IMG/VR virus record: IMGVR_UViG_3300030041_000009
Span: 124,001 to 188,000 of that record
Strand: one strand, 5' to 3'
DNA length: 64,000 nucleotides
Shown: positions 1,697 through 34,689 of the stretch, piece by piece
How the letters are laid out: the number at the start of each line of letters is the position of its first letter
How positions within the stretch are numbered: the first letter of the stretch is position 1
Notes under the pieces: generated by a model
What the model was told of the DNA's origin: nothing
Database searches by the model: none
What the model saw: the letters and a program-made list of their open reading frames with translations, nothing else
Program-made: the position numbers and the translations under genes

Positions 1697-2770
1697 ATGA
1701 AAAAAGTAAAGAACATTTTATTTAAAATGGAATTAGAAGGTAATGGTGTTGTTAACTGTGATAGTAATGGACAAAAATGGATATGGAATGAAATTAGTGG
1801 TGGAAAGTATGAAACTGATAATAATTTAATATTTGCAAAAAAAAATATATATCAGAAAAGTAATGGTGAATATGATTATAAAATAAAAATTTCTAGTAAT
1901 TGTTTAAGACATAATATTTTTATTGATGATATTCCATTTCAATCTCCAAATATATTGCATAATAATTATTTACTTGTGTCAATGTTGGCTTCTCCTGCAA
2001 TTATAAATAGAGGTCATTTATTTGCATTGAATGAAGATGAGATTGATAAAACAATTAGAAGAAAAAGTGTTTTATGTATAATTGACGCTGAACAAACAAA
2101 TAATTGTAAATCAAAAATAGAACTTATGACAGTTAGTGGTGAAAAAATAAGTGATACTTCATTATTTAACAAAGAAACTGTAGGAGATATAACATATGAG
2201 ACTGATGGTAATATTGATTTAATGCAAATGCAATTTATTAGTTGTTCTAAAAATTTAGATCGATTAGCATTCAATCCAGATTTATTTCCTTTATATTCAG
2301 AATTATTGAAAAAAAGATTACCATCATTTAATTCGGAATTAAAATATTATAGGATTACAAATAGTGTTGTTGAATTACCAGAATATGGTTTTTTATTATC
2401 CAATACAGATGTTGTTGAACTAACAAAAAATCTATTATATAAAATGCTAAAAATGAATATTTATAAATCTGGATCTAGTGTTGTTACGTCTAAACTTAAA
2501 ATTAAATTAGTATATGACGTATTTAATGATAAAAAAAATAATTCTGATGGATGGATTGAATTAACAAAAGATGTTATAGATAATTTAAATTTTGAAAATG
2601 AAAATTTTTATACTGAATATGATTTTGAAAATGCAAAAACTTTAGATATAGAATTGTCAGATAAGAGATCTATTATAATTAAAAAAAGAATAGATGCTAA
2701 ATTGAAAGCTAAAGATGATAAAAAAGAAAAAAAAGAAGCTAAATTAAAATCTCAAAAAGAAGCTAAATAA
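1697..2770 (+). CDS. cas7: Cas7 backbone protein, type I-F2 (Cas7fv)-like
   Basis: Motifs GNGVVN, ISSNCLRHNIF, LAS-x4-RG, TSLFNKETVGD, QMQFISxxKxxDRxA, ExGxLL match the recalled Shewanella Cas7fv pattern; next to cas6 and array. Confidence 0.85.
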   Translation: MKKVKNILFKMELEGNGVVNCDSNGQKWIWNEISGGKYETDNNLIFAKKNIYQKSNGEYDYKIKISSNCLRHNIFIDDIPFQSPNILHNNYLLVSMLASPAIINRGHLFALNEDEIDKTIRRKSVLCIIDAEQTNNCKSKIELMTVSGEKISDTSLFNKETVGDITYETDGNIDLMQMQFISCSKNLDRLAFNPDLFPLYSELLKKRLPSFNSELKYYRITNSVVELPEYGFLLSNTDVVELTKNLLYKMLKMNIYKSGSSVVTSKLKIKLVYDVFNDKKNNSDGWIELTKDVIDNLNFENENFYTEYDFENAKTLDIELSDKRSIIIKKRIDAKLKAKDDKKEKKEAKLKSQKEAK

Positions 2771-2780
2771 TTCTAATAAT

Positions 2781-3680
2781 ATGGAATATTTTTTAAAATT
2801 GTCATTTAAAGATGCTGGATTTTTTGAAAAAGCAACTAATAATCAAAAACCTAGTATAAGTGTTCATCAAATAAGTAACATGCTGCATGTTTTAATGGGT
2901 GAACGTCCAAGTCCAACATATAGAGATACATTAATTAAACCTATATCAGATATATTTAATATAGCTAATTTAGCTTATATAAAAATAGATACAACAAGAT
3001 TTTTAAATAAATCTAGTGGTAAAATGTGTTATATGAATGAGTTTATACAAACAAATAAATTTGCTTATGATAGCTATAGAGATAAAAAAAGAAGTTTTAT
3101 TTATTGGGAAAATCTAGAATGTTATTTAACTACTGATCTATTTATAGAAATGATTAATTTATTTAATAATATATTAGGTTATGATGTTAAATCAAAACCT
3201 GCAATGTATATAATAAAAGAGATTATTACATATTATAGTAGTTCTAAATTAGTTATAGATATTAATAATGAAATAAAAAATAATAGCAAAATAAAATTTG
3301 CAAATTTCATTAAACAATATAATGATAATTCTGATTTTACAATTTTTTGTAAAAAATTAGTTAAAAATAATAAAACTCCAATTGCAAATCTTCTTATTGG
3401 TATTGTAAATCAATCAGCAATAACAATTGGTCAAAATCCAAAAACTACATTAACAAATATTAGAGGAATTGATAATATTACAAAAATTAGTGGTTCTATA
3501 ATAATTCCTTTAACATCAGAATATGTTGACAAAATTAAAAATTCAAAAGGTTGTGCAACGTTATTAGATGGAGGATTTGTTTGGATAGAAGATTTGATAA
3601 ATGAAGATGAAATGATTGAAAATGATTTAGATAGTTATATTAATATTAATAAATTAGAAGAATATGAGAATAAAAATTGA
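2781..3680 (+). CDS. cas5: Cas5, type I-F2 (Cas5fv)-like
   Basis: Between cas7 and cas6; MLHVLMGER and TKISGSIII..LLDGGFVWI resemble Cas5fv N- and C-terminal RRM elements; ~300 aa with central helical insert. Confidence 0.7.
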   Translation: MEYFLKLSFKDAGFFEKATNNQKPSISVHQISNMLHVLMGERPSPTYRDTLIKPISDIFNIANLAYIKIDTTRFLNKSSGKMCYMNEFIQTNKFAYDSYRDKKRSFIYWENLECYLTTDLFIEMINLFNNILGYDVKSKPAMYIIKEIITYYSSSKLVIDINNEIKNNSKIKFANFIKQYNDNSDFTIFCKKLVKNNKTPIANLLIGIVNQSAITIGQNPKTTLTNIRGIDNITKISGSIIIPLTSEYVDKIKNSKGCATLLDGGFVWIEDLINEDEMIENDLDSYININKLEEYENKN

Positions 3681-4368
3681 ATTTACAGAAAATAAAACAT
3701 TGGTACCGATTAAGAATCAATCATATATTAATTATTATATACACAAATGTCTTGGAGTTAATAATAAATATCATGATTCTAAAAATGATTACTCTATATC
3801 ATCTTTATATGGTGGAAACCTAACTGAAGATAAGTTACATTTATCATTTAAGAATGGAGGAATTATTGTAGTAACTTCAAAAAATGAAGAATTTTTGAAT
3901 GATTTAATAAGTGGAGTGATGTCTAATCAAGATTTAAATTGGGGAATGAAATTTAATAAAATTAATTTTATCTTTGAAAAATTTATAAATGGATGGAATC
4001 ATTTCGCAACATTATCTCCATTTATTATTAGAAAGCATATTAATAAAAAGAAATATACTTATTCAACTTTAAATGATTCTGATTTCGTATATATTGTAAA
4101 AAACCATATTATAAAAAAATTGAGTAAAATTTATAACGGTATTAATTTAAAAGATTTTGATGTTAAAATAATAAATCATCCTTCACATAAAGTAAAGAAA
4201 ATAATGGTTAAAAATGTCAAAAATGAAGCTAATCAATGTCACATTAGTATATTTTGTTCATCTGATGTGGCAGAAAAAATTTATAATTTAGGTATAGGAC
4301 AATCAACTGGTTCTGGATTTGGTACAATTTATAAAACAGAAAATAAAGATAAATATAAATTAGTATGA
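3664..4368 (+). CDS. cas6: CRISPR-associated endoribonuclease Cas6 (canonical, non-Cas6f)
   Basis: C-terminal Gly-rich loop GIGQSTGSGFG, YSISSL and TLSPFII motifs; abuts array leader. Confidence 0.92.
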   Translation: MRIKIEFTENKTLVPIKNQSYINYYIHKCLGVNNKYHDSKNDYSISSLYGGNLTEDKLHLSFKNGGIIVVTSKNEEFLNDLISGVMSNQDLNWGMKFNKINFIFEKFINGWNHFATLSPFIIRKHINKKKYTYSTLNDSDFVYIVKNHIIKKLSKIYNGINLKDFDVKIINHPSHKVKKIMVKNVKNEANQCHISIFCSSDVAEKIYNLGIGQSTGSGFGTIYKTENKDKYKLV

Positions 4369-4469
4369 TAAAAATGAATAAATATAATGATATACGTATA
4401 TTAATAACTCATTTTTATTTATTAATATATACTATAAATAACTCAATATCAATTAATTATAAATATCCT
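4369..4469 (+). promoter_or_regulatory. AT-rich CRISPR leader
   Basis: Between cas6 and the first perfect repeat; repeat variants accumulate at the far end; contains TAATATATAC (4423-4432), like other putative phage promoters. Confidence 0.7.
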
Positions 4470-6930
4470 GATATTATTTATATAAATCCGTAAGGGAGTC
4501 TCAACCAATGAATTGATGTCTATCCTGTTCTGCTAGATATTATTTATATAAATCCGTAAGGGAGTCTCAACTCTAGCTGTTCAATCTCTTTAAATAGATT
4601 TGATATTATTTATATAAATCCGTAAGGGAGTCTCAACATAGTGCAATTACTTATTCTAACATAACAGGATATTATTTATATAAATCCGTAAGGGAGTCTC
4701 AACAAATAAAATGATTGACTTTCAATTATATCAGATATTATTTATATAAATCCGTAAGGGAGTCTCAACATATGTTATATATATGTATTTAATTTGTCGA
4801 TATTATTTATATAAATCCGTAAGGGAGTCTCAACGAGCGTCAGTCAATGTTGAATTCGCTTTTGATATTATTTATATAAATCCGTAAGGGAGTCTCAACA
4901 CATATTGCTTATTTACATTAAATACGCTAGATATTATTTATATAAATCCGTAAGGGAGTCTCAACTATAGTCAATTAAGAAAAGAGTTAATCGGTGATAT
5001 TATTTATATAAATCCGTAAGGGAGTCTCAACACATATTGCTTATTAGAATCAAATACGCTAGATATTATTTATATAAATCCGTAAGGGAGTCTCAACATA
5101 TTTCTACAAATCATTCAAAGAAGAAATGATATTATTTATATAAATCCGTAAGGGAGTCTCAACAAGTGTAGCCAGAAAAAATGGGAAAAGTGCGATATTA
5201 TTTATATAAATCCGTAAGGGAGTCTCAACGAACCCTATTAATGACATTTTTAGTGCAATGATATTATTTATATAAATCCGTAAGGGAGTCTCAACAAAGC
5301 AGAGCAGGAAAAGAAGTGATTATATGATATTATTTATATAAATCCGTAAGGGAGTCTCAACAGTTGATGAAAAAAATAGGGAGGTTATAGGATATTATTT
5401 ATATAAATCCGTAAGGGAGTCTCAACAATGAATTAAAGGCAACCGAAGTTCTTGATGATATTATTTATATAAATCCGTAAGGGAGTCTCAACGAATTACT
5501 ACGTAAAACAAAAAGTGATTCAGATATTATTTATATAAATCCGTAAGGGAGTCTCAACTTATCATATTTAATAAATATAGTAATATAAGATATTATTTAT
5601 ATAAATCCGTAAGGGAGTCTCAACAAAGGAAGTGATATTATTTCAAATACAAAAGATATTATTTATATAAATCCGTAAGGGAGTCTCAACGAAGGTGGTG
5701 CCAGCACATCTATTAATAAGATATTATTTATATAAATCCGTAAGGGAGTCTTAACAAGGTATCAATTCTTTTTCTTAATTGGTAAGATATTATTTATATA
5801 AATCCGTAAGGGAGTCTCAACCCTGATTTTCTTGTAAAGATTTTCAAATAAGATATTATTTATATAAATCCGTAAGGGAGTCTCAACGGTGATTATACAG
5901 ATTTAGAATTAGAATTAGATATTATTTATATAAATCCGTAAGGGAGTCTCAACAGAGAAACAGTTTTAGTTTTAGGTACAACAGATATTATTTATATAAA
6001 TCCGTAAGGGAGTCTCAACATTGATTGATATTCAGTTATAAAATAATTTGATATTATTTATATAAATCCGTAAGGGAGTCTCAACGGTGTAACTCCAATT
6101 TTCACAGATGATTTTGATATTATTTATATAAATCCGTAAGGGAATCTCAACTTCTTACCAGTTGAATATTCAGAGTATTTAGATATTATTTATATAAATC
6201 CGTAAGGGAATCTCAACTATAGAAAAGGAGGGAAGACACTTGTTAAAGATATTATTTATATAAATCCGTAATGGAGTCTCAACAATGAATTACAACGGTG
6301 AATTCTGTATGCAGATATTATTTATATAAATCCGTAAAGGAGTCTTAACAGTTTATGATTTGCAGCATATTCAGATAATGATATTATTTATATAAATCCG
6401 TAAGGGAGTCTCAACAAATCAAATGATCATTTAGATGACAGTTTAGATATTATTTATATAAATCCGTAATGGAGTCTCAACATATATAGAAGAAAAACAA
6501 ATGACAAATATTGATATTATTTATATAAATCTGTAAGGGAGTCTCAACAATAAATCTCTTTCTATTGTTTCTATAGTTGATATTATTTATATAAATCCGT
6601 AAGGGAGTCTCAACTAAAGAAGAAAAAATAATTCTGAATGATAAGATATTATTTATATAAATCCGTAAGGGAATCTCAACTTCTCTTTCTATTTTTGAAA
6701 AAAATGATAAGATATTATTTATATAAATCCGTAAGGGAGTCTCAACATGATTTAGAATTTATTACATTAAGTGAAGATATTATTTATATAAATCCGTAAG
6801 GGAGTCTCAACGACGAACAAGGTCGCACAGAAGTCGAATTCGATATTATTTATATAAATCCGTAAGGGAATCTCAACAAAATAGTGACACTATTTAAATA
6901 TGTGTTTATTATATTTATATAAATCAGTAA
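4470..6930 (+). CRISPR. CRISPR array: 37 full-length 36-bp repeats (GATATTATTTATATAAATCCGTAAGGGAGTCTCAAC) plus a degenerate terminal repeat at ~6907-6930; 37 spacers of 29-31 nt
   Basis: Counted directly; ~66-bp period; point variants only from repeat 20 onward. Confidence 0.99.
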
Positions 6931-6996
6931 TTAAATTTATGATTTATATTATAAATAATTAAAAAATTATTTTTATTCACAATTAAAATAAAAAAT

Positions 6997-9294
6997 ATGA
7001 AATTAGAAGAAATTGTATCAAATAGTAGTGGAATATCATTAATAACTCATTCAAAAGCAGTTAAAAAAATAGGAATGATGTTATCAAAAAAGTTATCATT
7101 AAATGAAGACCTTGAAAAACAAATTTCAATAGCTTGTTTATTGCATGATTTAGGTAAATGTAATTTAGATTTTCAAAATTATATAAAATCAAAAAGTAAA
7201 ACAATTTCTTTTATTAATTCTCCAATATTTCATCATGAAATAAGTTGGGCATTTGTGTCATGTATTTTAAATAATGATGAATATAGATATTCTTTAGATT
7301 CAATATATTGGCATCATTCTAAACCAAAAATAAATTATATAAGTAATGATAATATATCATTAATTTTAAGTGATATGTGTGATGATGATAAAAAAAATAT
7401 TTTATCAATGTATAATTTTTTAATGAATGAAAATATATTATTTGAAGATATAAATTTTGAAAAATCTATCAATACTCCATTATATTATTTAAATGAACCA
7501 AATAGTTTAACAAATTCTAAAAATTCATTAGTAAGATCTTGTGTTATAACTGCTGATAGACTTGTATCAGCATCAGATCAAGAAAAAATATTGTATGATG
7601 ATGATTATTGTGAAGAATTAATAAACAATTTATCATATAAAGATACTAAAGTATATAGCAAACCTATTAATTATGATTCTATTCGTTTTGATTCTCAAGT
7701 TGATTACGCAAATCAATCATTAAATAATCGAACTACAATAATGAAAGCCCCAGCCGGTTTTGGTAAAACATTATTGGGGTTATTATGGTCATTAAAATCT
7801 AATAAAAAATTAATATGGGTATGCCCTAGAAATATTATTGCTGAAAATGTATATAATTCTGTTTTACAAGAATTAAAAAATATATCAGTTGAATTATCAG
7901 TTGAGTTATATTTAACAGGTAATAGACAGAAAACAAATAATGAAAACACTAAAGAATTTACATCTGATATTATAATAACTAATATAGATAATTATTTATC
8001 TCCTAATGTGAATAATTCTATTAGAAATAGATTATTTGTTATTAATTATTGTGATGTGATTTTTGATGAATATCATGAATTAATTAAAGATGATGCACTA
8101 TTTGCATGTTTTATTAATATCATGAAATCTAGACATATGTTAACAAATAGTCACACATTATTATTAAGTGCTACACAAACTATAATGGAATATTTATGGG
8201 ATGGAACAAATATAGATAAAAAAACTAAAATTTTACCAAATAAAAATTCTCATTATACATCTGCACATAATGGTAAATATTTGATTAATTATATTGATGA
8301 TATTGATACAATAACTAATGAAAAAGATTCAGTTGTTATTATGAATTCTATTTCAAATTCTCAAAGATTATATTGTTATAAAAAAGGCGATATTTTAATA
8401 CATAGTAGATATATAGATTCTGATAAAGAAAAAATAATGAATAAAATTATTCATTTATATGGCAAAGAAAATAAAAATATTTTGAATAAAGATAGTATTA
8501 TATCAGCACCTATTTTACAAGCATCTATGGATATATCATTTTTAAATTTAACAGATAGTGTGATGTCTCCAGAAACTACTTTACAAAGAATAGGTCGATG
8601 TGATAGGTGGGGACATTTTTATTATAAAAAAAATAAAACTCCAAAAATAAATTTATTTTTTAATGAAAATAAAAGTGAATTTAGAAACTCAGAAAACACT
8701 AGTATATCAAATCAATATGATTTAGAATTAAATAAATTATGGATTTCATTTATTAAAAAACATATTATTAACGGAAATTTATATTCAATAAATGAATTAT
8801 ATGAATATTATAATATGTTTAATAATGAAAATAATGAAAATTTAAAAAAGTTTATCACATCTAAACTAAAAACAAGTTTATTAAATTTATGTAAAATTGA
8901 ACCGTATAAGATGATGGAGAAATCTAAAAACAATACAATTAAAAATAATAATACTAAATTAAGAAGTGGAGGAGATATATATTGTATATATAAATATGCA
9001 AAAAAAAGACAAATGACGGACTCATTTAGTGTAGATTTTAATCGAGATATTAAAAAATCTGAACCAATAACAGGTTTAGATAGTAAAATTAAGAGAATAA
9101 TAAAGAATATTATAAAAATTAAGGATGATAGATTTTTTTATAATAAATATTCGTTATTTAAAAATAATCAATATACTTTACCTATACTTAAAGATTATGC
9201 CAGGAAAAAAGAAACCCCATATATTGCATTTGATAAAGTTTATTGTGAAAAATTAGGATTAGTAAAAAATGATATTTACGATAATTTAATATAA
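6997..9294 (+). CDS. cas3: Cas3 HD nuclease-helicase (no N-terminal Cas2 fusion)
   Basis: HD motifs HS, LLHDLGK, HHE, WHH, AD; SF2 motifs APAGFGKT, DEYH, SAT, HSR, QRIGRCDR; follows array. Confidence 0.95.
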   Translation: MKLEEIVSNSSGISLITHSKAVKKIGMMLSKKLSLNEDLEKQISIACLLHDLGKCNLDFQNYIKSKSKTISFINSPIFHHEISWAFVSCILNNDEYRYSLDSIYWHHSKPKINYISNDNISLILSDMCDDDKKNILSMYNFLMNENILFEDINFEKSINTPLYYLNEPNSLTNSKNSLVRSCVITADRLVSASDQEKILYDDDYCEELINNLSYKDTKVYSKPINYDSIRFDSQVDYANQSLNNRTTIMKAPAGFGKTLLGLLWSLKSNKKLIWVCPRNIIAENVYNSVLQELKNISVELSVELYLTGNRQKTNNENTKEFTSDIIITNIDNYLSPNVNNSIRNRLFVINYCDVIFDEYHELIKDDALFACFINIMKSRHMLTNSHTLLLSATQTIMEYLWDGTNIDKKTKILPNKNSHYTSAHNGKYLINYIDDIDTITNEKDSVVIMNSISNSQRLYCYKKGDILIHSRYIDSDKEKIMNKIIHLYGKENKNILNKDSIISAPILQASMDISFLNLTDSVMSPETTLQRIGRCDRWGHFYYKKNKTPKINLFFNENKSEFRNSENTSISNQYDLELNKLWISFIKKHIINGNLYSINELYEYYNMFNNENNENLKKFITSKLKTSLLNLCKIEPYKMMEKSKNNTIKNNNTKLRSGGDIYCIYKYAKKRQMTDSFSVDFNRDIKKSEPITGLDSKIKRIIKNIIKIKDDRFFYNKYSLFKNNQYTLPILKDYARKKETPYIAFDKVYCEKLGLVKNDIYDNLI

Positions 9295-20645: not shown

Positions 20646-20849
20646 ATGAAAGAATTAATAGATGATACTCAGGTTCCAGATAGAGGATATTATTATTTAT
20701 TAGATTGGAATGAAGCCGATAGATGGGAAACTATGCTAAGATTATTTGATAAAAAAAGATTATGTGATTTGGAATTACATGAATATATTCAATTATTCGA
20801 AATTGCAACAAAAAAAGATTTAGAAAATTTAAAAATAGAAAAAACTTAA
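20646..20849 (+). CDS. Hypothetical protein
   Basis: ORF track. Confidence 0.6.
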   Translation: MKELIDDTQVPDRGYYYLLDWNEADRWETMLRLFDKKRLCDLELHEYIQLFEIATKKDLENLKIEKT

Positions 20850-20895
20850 TAAAATTATATTACTATATACATTACAAACAAAAATTAAAATTCTT

Positions 20896-20949
20896 ATGAA
20901 TAATAATATTTCAAACATGATTCAGCAACAACAACAAACTTACGTTTGA
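20896..20949 (+). CDS. Gln-rich leader peptide MNNNISNMIQQQQQTYV
   Basis: CAG CAA CAA CAA CAA run; stop codon overlaps antiterminator arm; precedes two tRNA-Gln genes. Confidence 0.75.
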   Translation: MNNNISNMIQQQQQTYV

Positions 20950-21033
20950 TTGGGTTAGAGTCATGTCTGTTTTTTACCCAATCCTGAAATGGTTTGGGTT
21001 TTTTTGTGCCCAACATTTTATGTTGGGTTTTTT
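20916..21033 (+). promoter_or_regulatory. Transcription attenuator with two tandem terminators
   Basis: Antiterminator GATTGGGT(20948-55)/ACCCAATC(20976-83); terminator 1 at 20976-21005; terminator 2 at 21008-21033. Confidence 0.75.
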
Positions 21034-21043
21034 GTTAATATAC

Positions 21044-21129
21044 TGCCTTGTGATGGAATTGGCTAAACATTTCAGTCTTTGAAACTGATGCTCATTGTGA
21101 GCTTGTGGGTTCGAACCCCACCAAGGCGA
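21044..21129 (+). tRNA. tRNA with TTG (Gln) anticodon on a class II long-variable-arm body
   Basis: Acceptor TGCCTTG/CAAGGCG, anticodon arm TCAGT-CTTTGAA-ACTGA, variable stem GCTCA/TGAGC, T-arm GTGGG-TTCGAAC-CCCAC; CCA not encoded. Confidence 0.85.
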
Positions 21130-21135
21130 CAATAT

Positions 21136-21206
21136 TCTTTCTTGATGTAATGATAGCATATCATTTTCTGACAATGAATGACTAAGTTCAAATCTTAGAG
21201 AAAGAA
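21136..21206 (+). tRNA. tRNA-Gln(CTG), AT-rich
   Basis: Acceptor TCTTTCT/AGAAAGA, anticodon arm TCATT-TTCTGAC-AATGA, T-arm CTAAG-TTCAAAT-CTTAG; D-loop has GA instead of GG. Confidence 0.75.
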
Positions 21207-21207
21207 C

Positions 21208-21244
21208 AAAAAAATCCTGAAATTTAAATTTCAGGATTTTTTTT
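21208..21244. terminator. Bidirectional terminator after tRNAs
   Basis: Perfect palindrome AAAATCCTGAAATTTAAATTTCAGGATTTT. Confidence 0.7.
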
Positions 21245-33714: not shown

Positions 33715-34689
33715 TTATTCTTCTGATGAATCAATATCAAAAAAATTGTTAGCGTCATCATCGTCATCTCCAAATGCTTCATCATTAATTTTACTAGATT
33801 TTGATTCTTTTGTTGATACATTATCATTAGATGAATTTTCAGCTTCTTTTTTAGCAAAAGATGTTTCATTACCTGAAATAATATCAAGTATTTGAGTTAC
33901 TTTAAATCTATCTTCAGAAGTCCATTCTTTTGGTTGATGATCTTCAAGATCAATTGTACGTTCCTTTAAAAACGTCATTACTTTTTCTTTAACTTTAGGA
34001 TTAGTAATTTTATTTTTTCCTGTTTTTTCATCAACTTCAATTGGAACTTTAACCAAACCTTTTGGAGTCATAATTTTAATAGGAGATACTTCTAAAAAAG
34101 TACTAGAATCATAATTAGGAAATTCTCCTAATTGCTTCATAACCAATTTGAAGTCTTTACCATTTGCCAAATCAAAAACATTACAAGCATCTGATGATAT
34201 ACCATCTTTTTGATCTTTAATTTTTTCTTTGATTTTGTAACCATAAGGATAAATTAAAATTTTGCCTTCTAAATCACGATTTTGTTCATCTTCAATTACT
34301 AAAATATAAGAATAATATTTAGTACTTCTACTAATCAAATCTGCTTTTTCAACATCTGATGCGTTTTTTGAGTTCTTCAACTTCCAGTACATAGTACAAA
34401 TATCACATTTATCTGTGAAATTTTTCATACAATCATAGTAACCTTGAAGTTCTGGATGATTTTTAAAATCAACATAATGCTGATGTTTTTCAATTGCTGA
34501 TAATGATACTTTACCATCTTTTGTAAGATTTGGTAAAAATCTAATAGTAGAAACATAACCTTTCTTTTTGTCTGTAATTTTAGGACGATAAATACCATCT
34601 AAACTACCACCTTTTTTTTCTAGAAAATCTAGAGTTTCGCTTTGTGCGTCAATTGCGTCGAATAAATCGACATTTTCAAATTCTTTCAT
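33715..34689 (-). CDS. Single-stranded DNA-binding protein, T4 gp32-like
   Basis: IRFLP, H/C-x-C-x2-C Zn ligands, FDLANGKDF, NYDSSTF, acidic C-terminal tail. Confidence 0.85.
   Translation of the reverse strand: MKEFENVDLFDAIDAQSETLDFLEKKGGSLDGIYRPKITDKKKGYVSTIRFLPNLTKDGKVSLSAIEKHQHYVDFKNHPELQGYYDCMKNFTDKCDICTMYWKLKNSKNASDVEKADLISRSTKYYSYILVIEDEQNRDLEGKILIYPYGYKIKEKIKDQKDGISSDACNVFDLANGKDFKLVMKQLGEFPNYDSSTFLEVSPIKIMTPKGLVKVPIEVDEKTGKNKITNPKVKEKVMTFLKERTIDLEDHQPKEWTSEDRFKVTQILDIISGNETSFAKKEAENSSNDNVSTKESKSSKINDEAFGDDDDDANNFFDIDSSEE

Follow-up and report, generated by a model that had tools for sequence, protein, structure and literature searches.

The locus examined here raises the question of which amino acid is carried by a phage tRNA that combines a glutamine anticodon with a long-armed, leucine-like body, and why a phage would maintain such a molecule. 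The gene lies in a 64,000-nucleotide stretch (hereafter the window) covering positions 124,001 to 188,000 of the IMG/VR virus record IMGVR_UViG_3300030041_000009, a single 214.5 kb contig from a huge peat-soil phage. A sequence-only reading had described positions 21044-21129 as a tRNA with a Gln(UUG) anticodon on a Leu-like class II scaffold. It proposed either a re-purposed scaffold charged with Gln, possibly evading a tRNA-Gln-specific nuclease, or a Leu-for-Gln missense tRNA rescuing stalled ribosomes, and argued that a Gln leader speaks against simple decay.

The locus and its genomic context

The described tRNA is present in every particular. ARAGORN called tRNA(ttg) at 21044-21130 and the Rfam tRNA model RF00005 matched 21044-21129 at 48.6 bits (gathering score 29). 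The cloverleaf has a 7-bp acceptor stem opening with U1.G72, the discriminator A73 (21129), a 3-bp D-stem ATG/CAT with the GAATTGG D-loop, the anticodon loop CUUUGAA, a variable arm GCTCA-TTG-TGAGC (21090-21102) flanked by U and UU, a standard 5-bp T-stem, and no encoded CCA. The acceptor/T branch is the canonical 7/5. The tRNA is 47% GC in a 22% GC contig. Six nucleotides downstream lies a class I tRNA-Gln(CUG) (52.9 bits) that the earlier description did not mention. The elements of the locus are the following:

20828-20855 (+), possible promoter (TTTAAA-16-TAAAAT) upstream of the leader, found by a consensus scan; the evidence is weak, as promoter-like sites are not enriched over shuffles and a Bacteroidota host would use a different promoter type
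20896-20949 (+), leader mini-ORF MNNNISNMIQQQQQTYV with the Gln-codon run CAG CAA CAA CAA CAA at 20923-20937 and stop codon TGA at 20947-20949
20950-20955 (+), segment S1 (TTGGGT), directly after the stop codon, able to pair with S2
20976-21005 (+), first terminator T1, in which S2 (20976-20981) pairs with S3 (20993-20999), followed by a U-run
20994-21013 (+), alternative hairpin S3:S4, a putative antiterminator competing with the second terminator
21008-21033 (+), second intrinsic terminator T2, in which S4 (21008-21016) pairs with S5 (21020-21028), followed by a U-run and ending 10 nt before the tRNA
21044-21129 (+), class II-bodied tRNA with anticodon UUG (21079-21081), variable region 21089-21104, U1.G72 and A73
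21136-21206 (+), class I tRNA-Gln(CUG) with U1-A72 and A73, 29% GC, in the same operon
21208-21243 (no strand assigned), 16-bp hairpin flanked by A- and T-runs, a strong bidirectional terminator closing the tRNA operon

The contig carries a T4 gp32-like single-stranded DNA-binding protein (33715-34689, minus strand; Pfam PF08804, 4e-20; phrog_224) and a type I-F-variant CRISPR-Cas locus (window 1697-9294) composed of a Cas7fv-like ORF (1697-2770), a CRISPR-like array of about 35 units with period 66 (4470-6811) and a Cas3fv-like HD-helicase (6997-9294). Upstream of the cas genes lie about three tandem copies of a 247-bp unit (819-1612; 69-74% matches). The gene neighbourhood of the tRNAs consists of ORFans only, without RNA repair or nuclease genes. 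One ORF of the contig matches only the five 634-735 kb 'Mahaphage' genomes, which their authors assigned to Bacteroidetes hosts (PMC7162821). The host is only inferred to be Bacteroidota, from this kinship and from the lack of SD motifs, as only 3 of 298 ORFs have an SD-like motif.

CheckV rates the contig about 30% complete and its relatives 16-46%, so that no statement on the whole tRNA set is made. An initial view that the phage carries only three tRNAs, all related to Gln, was dropped for this reason and because Infernal found further tRNA-like genes outside the window that ARAGORN had missed (contig positions 23136-23233, 23321-23413, 210635-210703 and 212548-212616). Two are long (98 and 93 nt) with A-rich anticodon loops lacking U33 (motif AGCCAAAAAAGC), and two are identical 69-nt copies 1.9 kb apart. 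A similar 90-nt gene occurs in the sequence G001 at 320693-320782. A tRNA with a CUA (amber-reading) anticodon lies at contig positions 4949-5020. Nevertheless, recoding of TAG to Gln is not supported in this fragment: standard code 11 gives good coding density, TAG ends 13 of 298 ORFs, and the only three candidate in-frame TAGs align to TGG, CTG and TGA.

A family of class II tRNAs with a UUG anticodon

The locus is 100% identical in six other, independent IMG/VR assemblies and present in many peat metagenome runs, so it is not an assembly artefact. A pattern combining a Leu-type D-loop, the CTTTGAA loop, class II spacing and the T-loop retrieved 9 more viral and 34 metagenome loci (designated L below). 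A cellular origin or a host copy was rejected: two hits among about 185,000 prokaryote species genomes and five metagenome hits proved to be chance matches in non-tRNA sequence, and E. coli genomes gave no match. The four published Mahaphage genomes searched lack the design, their only tRNA-like hit being a tRNA-Ser(UGA). After removal of chance hits, 21 distinct class II-length tRNA(UUG) sequences remained, all in viral and metagenome contigs. On these 21 sequences 96.9% of cells pair, against 35-44% when partners are slid, and 23 of 25 pairs show compensatory double changes, including all five pairs of the variable arm, with 0 of 500 shuffles as good. The tRNA is thus supported by covariation, and the 16-nt variable region with its 5-bp stem, together with the 3-bp D-stem, gives it a class II architecture.

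The sequence-only reading had named in advance the finding of a TAG or TGA anticodon in reads or related genomes as a result that would overturn it. Every relative was found to carry TTG, although the search pattern fixed the D-loop, anticodon loop and T-loop, so that conservation of these parts is by construction. Strain variants in other peat, freshwater and soil runs (at window 21046 and from 21061 onward; runs X8 and X10) show C3 changed to U, an inserted A before the tRNA, and a copy with a different but compensated anticodon stem (CTACT...AGTAG) around the same CTTTGAA loop.

Leu-like body and Gln-like acceptor end

The body of the tRNA is Leu-like. The best annotated GenBank matches are tRNA-Leu genes, and the tRNA-Leu(UAG) of Aeromonas phage APT65 is 86% identical over the 5' half, with an anticodon loop that differs only at position 35. 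The tertiary set A14, A15-U48 and G18G19 of tRNA-Leu is present. The anticodon, however, has U35 in all 21 relatives and not the A35 common to the Leu isoacceptors (NAG or NAA), and matches the YUG of tRNA-Gln with U35 and G36.

The acceptor end is not Leu-like in the family. The 1:72 pair is U-A in 14 sequences, U.G in 3, A-U in 1, G.U in 1 and G-C in only 1, being non-G-C in 20/21, and 2:71 is G-C in 18/21. U1 occurs in 18/21 long Gln forms and 26/26 class I tRNA-Gln of the same loci but in only 7/102 other tRNAs. Acceptor-stem identity to class I Gln neighbours averages 4.2/7, against 1.75/7 to non-Gln neighbours, and reaches 7/7 in three loci (L024, L039 and L041). The one member with a Leu-type acceptor end (L031 1573-1658; G1-C72, C2-G71, G3-C70, A73) lies on a GC-rich 2.6 kb contig and could be a genuine Leu-bodied missense tRNA or have a separate origin. 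The discriminator varies between A, G and U, about a quarter of the family having A73 and most G73 or U73.

The identity rules reviewed in PMC9976931 give a frame for these marks. E. coli LeuRS needs A73 and D/T-loop tertiary elements and ignores the anticodon and the variable arm, and G73 is an antideterminant for it. GlnRS reads U35, G36, the 10-25 pair and the acceptor end, and U1-A72 is read by GluRS2 and by the amidotransferases. A weak first pair of the U1-A72 type is read by GlnRS, GluRS2 and GatCAB. A class II amber tRNA-Ser was switched from Ser to Gln acceptance by U35 and changes at pairs 1-72 and 3-70 (cited in PMC9976931); this was a laboratory construct with a CUA anticodon, while the present family is natural with a sense anticodon. 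The family therefore carries the marks one would engineer to make a class II body a Gln acceptor. For the present member, A73 does not settle Leu identity in either direction, as it is also carried by the class I Gln twin and the discriminator varies in the family. Likewise, of the E. coli GlnRS set, G2-C71 is present while C3-G70, A73 and A10 (A10-U25) stand in place of G3-C70, G73 and G10. That the class I twin also has A73 and A10 suggests different rules in the host, these being simply the local Gln rules, but the rules of the host are unknown and the comparison does not settle Gln identity in either direction. No complex prediction with GlnRS was run, since its shuffled-RNA controls do not separate Gln from Leu identity and the gene lacks CCA.

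Over-long tRNAs of other isotypes were found beside normal-length twins in phage tRNA arrays (L015, L025, L028, L030, L034, L038, L039, L043, L050-L056, and G001 at 56-58 kb, L061): Pro (95-98 nt), His (86-96), Trp (83-84), Glu (86-94), Asn (89-90), Met (88-92), Val (86) and Cys (82). Every long Pro tRNA has C1-G72 and A73, the long His tRNAs have GUG...CAC with the discriminator of their twin, and the long Trp tRNAs have A1-U72 and G73, all cognate marks. The 330 kb relative of this phage also has long Cys, Met, Asn and Glu tRNAs. The converse case occurs as well, i.e. class I-length tRNA-Leu genes (74-77 nt) lacking the long variable arm, at L015 14299-14375, in L055 (Leu tag/caa/taa, 74-76 nt) and at L058 120-196, the latter in the isolated and annotated Aeromonas phage APT65. 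Many class I tRNA-Gln twins (L014, L017, L024, L025, L028, L030 and others) have unusual anticodon loops with G37 (UUUUGGU, AUUUGGA, UUCUGGA) instead of the usual A37, which resembles the anticodon-loop mutations proposed to evade anticodon nucleases.

Meaning of CAA codons in the phage proteins

The meaning of CAA was addressed by comparing 201 orthologous ORFs (117 kb, median 79% identity) between this contig and the 330 kb relative. Of 302 CAA changes, 48 go to CAG, 192 to K/E/R/N/H/D codons and 10 to Leu codons. In contrast, TTA, CTA, CTT and TTG change to other Leu codons in 45-77% of cases and to Gln in at most 1.5%. CAA is thus a Gln codon for these phages, and a Leu-inserting UUG tRNA would damage their own proteins. 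This evidence on charging is indirect, aminoacylation not having been assayed with either enzyme.

A putative leader-peptide attenuator

The Gln run of the mini-ORF is the only run of five or more Gln codons on either strand of the 214.5 kb contig. Three diverged variants keep the ORF: four of five variable sites are third codon positions, one change is S-to-L, and the Gln run and the stop are invariant. Translation itself has not been shown, and the conservation is shallow, resting on three close variants and one analogue. In those relatives the operon holds three or four different Gln tRNAs, whereas in this phage the class II tRNA is the only UUG reader of the operon.

The region after the stop codon folds far better than shuffles (z = -3.9). 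S2:S3 (-11.0 kcal/mol, formed in the MFE structure) and S4:S5 (-11.1 kcal/mol) are terminator hairpins, whereas S1:S2 (-6.7 kcal/mol) and S3:S4 (-7.1 kcal/mol) are mutually exclusive alternatives to them, the latter excluding both T1 and T2. Relatives show a compensatory A-U to U-A swap in the T2 stem. The hairpins and geometry expected of an attenuator governed by ribosome position are therefore present, but T2 is thermodynamically favoured over its antiterminator, so that antitermination of T2 would have to be kinetic; function was not assayed, and these observations do not decide whether the element attenuates.

An unrelated 109 kb activated-sludge contig (L029) has a different leader, MKNINNNLQYLQQQQNYC, of analogous geometry: CAA x4, three sense codons, a stop, then a segment pairing with the 5' half of a terminator, directly before a class II UUG tRNA. 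Two other candidates were examined. The WWW mini-ORF before a long tRNA-Trp in L055 was rejected, being the tail of a small membrane-protein ORF and abutting a tRNA-Leu. A Gln-rich mini-ORF (7 Q in 22 residues; L052 1151-1219), 44 nt upstream of a class I plus class II Gln tRNA pair, has no recognisable terminator and may or may not be a leader. No Rfam leader family matches the element, sub-threshold Thr and His leader hits falling on the downstream terminator. Compared with trp, his and pheL type attenuators, it has a short ORF with a run of regulatory codons, a stop codon abutting segment 1, mutually exclusive hairpins and an intrinsic terminator, but it precedes tRNA genes instead of biosynthetic genes, lies on a phage and has two tandem terminators.

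Interpretation

The observation made from the sequence alone is confirmed. Its interpretation is supported in part: the Gln-charged re-purposed scaffold fits the comparative data, the missense alternative is disfavoured although not excluded for this A73 member, the argument from the leader against decay is strengthened by the conserved leader and hairpins and by the independent analogue, and the evasion of a tRNA-Gln-specific nuclease remains pure inference.

With moderate confidence, the element is best explained as a functional phage tRNA that decodes CAA (and probably CAG) and is most likely charged with glutamine, i.e. a disguised spare tRNA-Gln. It combines the core of a tRNA-Leu with the two regions read by Gln-charging enzymes, the anticodon and a weak first acceptor pair followed by G2-C71, and would be co-transcribed with tRNA-Gln(CUG). 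In this view, when Gln-tRNA is plentiful the ribosome reaches the stop codon and masks S1, both terminators fold and little tRNA is made. When the ribosome stalls on the Gln codons, 12-24 nt upstream, S1 would be free to pair with S2, which removes T1 and frees S3 to hold S4, so that RNA polymerase reads into the tRNA genes. The operon would be a self-regulating spare supply, switched on when tRNA-Gln of the cell runs short. Making more tRNA helps only when tRNA, not glutamine, is limiting, which points to depletion of host tRNA-Gln during infection. A plausible trigger is a host or phage tRNA-targeting nuclease, for which the foreign class II shape could be a poor substrate. The analysis itself establishes the tRNA and its selection, the Gln-type acceptor marks, the Gln meaning of CAA and the conservation of leader and hairpins; Gln charging and the attenuation mechanism with its direction are inferred from these, and nuclease evasion is speculative, no nuclease having been identified and no resistance measured. 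Processing and expression are likewise without data, the metatranscriptome contigs covering only the flanking ORFs.

Three other explanations appear unlikely. The first is a Leu-charged missense tRNA, inserting Leu at part of the CAA codons as deliberate mistranslation or as rescue of ribosomes stalled at Gln codons. The Leu-like body, A73 and the tertiary set favour it, and LeuRS could still charge this member. Against it, most of the family lacks A73, the G1-C72 typical of tRNA-Leu has been replaced by a weak pair in 20/21, CAA evolves as Gln, and the class II tRNA is the only UUG reader in an operon of a phage where CAA makes up 89% of Gln codons. The second is a dedicated pair, in which a phage synthetase encoded in the roughly 70% of the genome not on this contig charges the tRNA with Gln, the class II body making the pair orthogonal to host enzymes. 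The incompleteness of the contig allows it. No Glu/GlnRS catalytic domain or GatB was found in this contig or in three relatives totalling 826 kb, which is uninformative given incomplete genomes, and small contigs (17-60 kb) also carry the design. The third is plain codon supply, the classical explanation of phage tRNAs, in which a 22% GC phage boosts CAA decoding and the class II body is a neutral accident of descent from a tRNA-Leu. The share of CAA among Gln codons favours it, but Gln is only 2.2% of codons, the far commoner AAA, AAT, TTA and GAA have no tRNA in this operon, the variable arm is maintained by compensatory changes across 21 lineages, the class switch recurs in Pro, His, Trp, Glu, Asn, Met and Cys tRNAs beside normal twins, and constitutive supply needs no stall-sensing leader.

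A non-decoding role, as a decoy or sponge for a tRNA-binding nuclease or modification enzyme (a decoy role has been suggested for overexpressed phage tRNAs; PMC12409363), or as a Ser-charged allo-tRNA-like suppressor (a long variable arm is the main SerRS determinant and allo-tRNAs with non-Ser anticodons exist; PMC5389517), is very unlikely given the 7/5 branch, the A73 of this member, the short variable arms of the family (3-5 bp), the strictly kept anticodon and anticodon loop, and the match between the codons of the leader and the two anticodons of the operon.

Relation to known tRNAs

Canonical bacterial tRNA-Gln shares with the element the anticodon, a weak first pair with U1 and G2-C71, and ordinary tRNA-Gln genes lie adjacent to it, but the 16-nt variable region replaces the 4-5 nt loop of a class I body, with a 3-bp D-stem and a Leu-type D-loop. 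Bacterial tRNA-Leu, such as that of APT65, shares the D-arm, tertiary nucleotides, A73 and overall core, but not the anticodon, the G1-C72 pair or, in the family, a discriminator fixed at A. The allo-tRNAs (Mukai et al. 2017, PMC5389517) also join a long variable arm to an anticodon that does not belong to Leu, Ser or Tyr and are found mainly in metagenomes. They have 8/4 or 9/3 branches, Sec-like D-arms and G73/U73 and are read as Ser or Ala acceptors (missense or nonsense suppressors), whereas all members of this family have a 7/5 branch and the family keeps the acceptor marks of the isotype specified by its anticodon. Phage tRNAs were shown to rescue infection from tRNA-cleaving defences through small changes in the anticodon stem-loop (PMC10264068; PMC12409363; PMC13056530), as for T5 tRNA-Lys versus PARIS AriB (van den Berg et al. 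2023). These too are phage-encoded duplicates of a host isoacceptor with a departing structure, proposed to replace cleaved host tRNA, but they differ by point changes, while here the whole tRNA class is switched. By inference, such a wholesale change of class would be a more radical version of the same escape. No prior description of class II-bodied Gln, Pro or His tRNAs, or of leader-attenuated tRNA operons, was found in the literature searched, which did not cover subscription-only papers.

A broader reading is not excluded, although we hold it to be less likely than not on present evidence. Uncultured phages, mostly large ones, would systematically switch tRNA class, grafting a long variable arm and a class II core onto Gln, Pro, His, Trp, Glu, Asn, Met and Cys tRNAs and removing the arm from some Leu tRNAs, while keeping the cognate acceptor and anticodon identity. 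This would produce isoacceptors invisible to shape-reading tRNA-targeting immunity, at least the Gln set being held in reserve by a ribosome-stall-sensing leader-peptide attenuator, a regulatory logic not previously described for tRNA genes.

In bacteria, tRNA class has been treated as fixed per amino acid, a long arm meaning Leu, Ser, Tyr or Sec. A natural, covariation-supported family of class II-bodied tRNAs keeping Gln identity marks, with parallel Pro, His and Trp cases, would show that aaRS identity and tRNA architecture can be uncoupled in nature, and would supply ready-made orthogonal scaffolds for genetic-code engineering. It would also give a new form of the arms race between phages and tRNases, in which escape occurs by changing shape instead of by point mutation. 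A leader-peptide attenuator controlling tRNA genes would extend a textbook mechanism to a new target and would act as a built-in sensor of tRNA depletion during infection.
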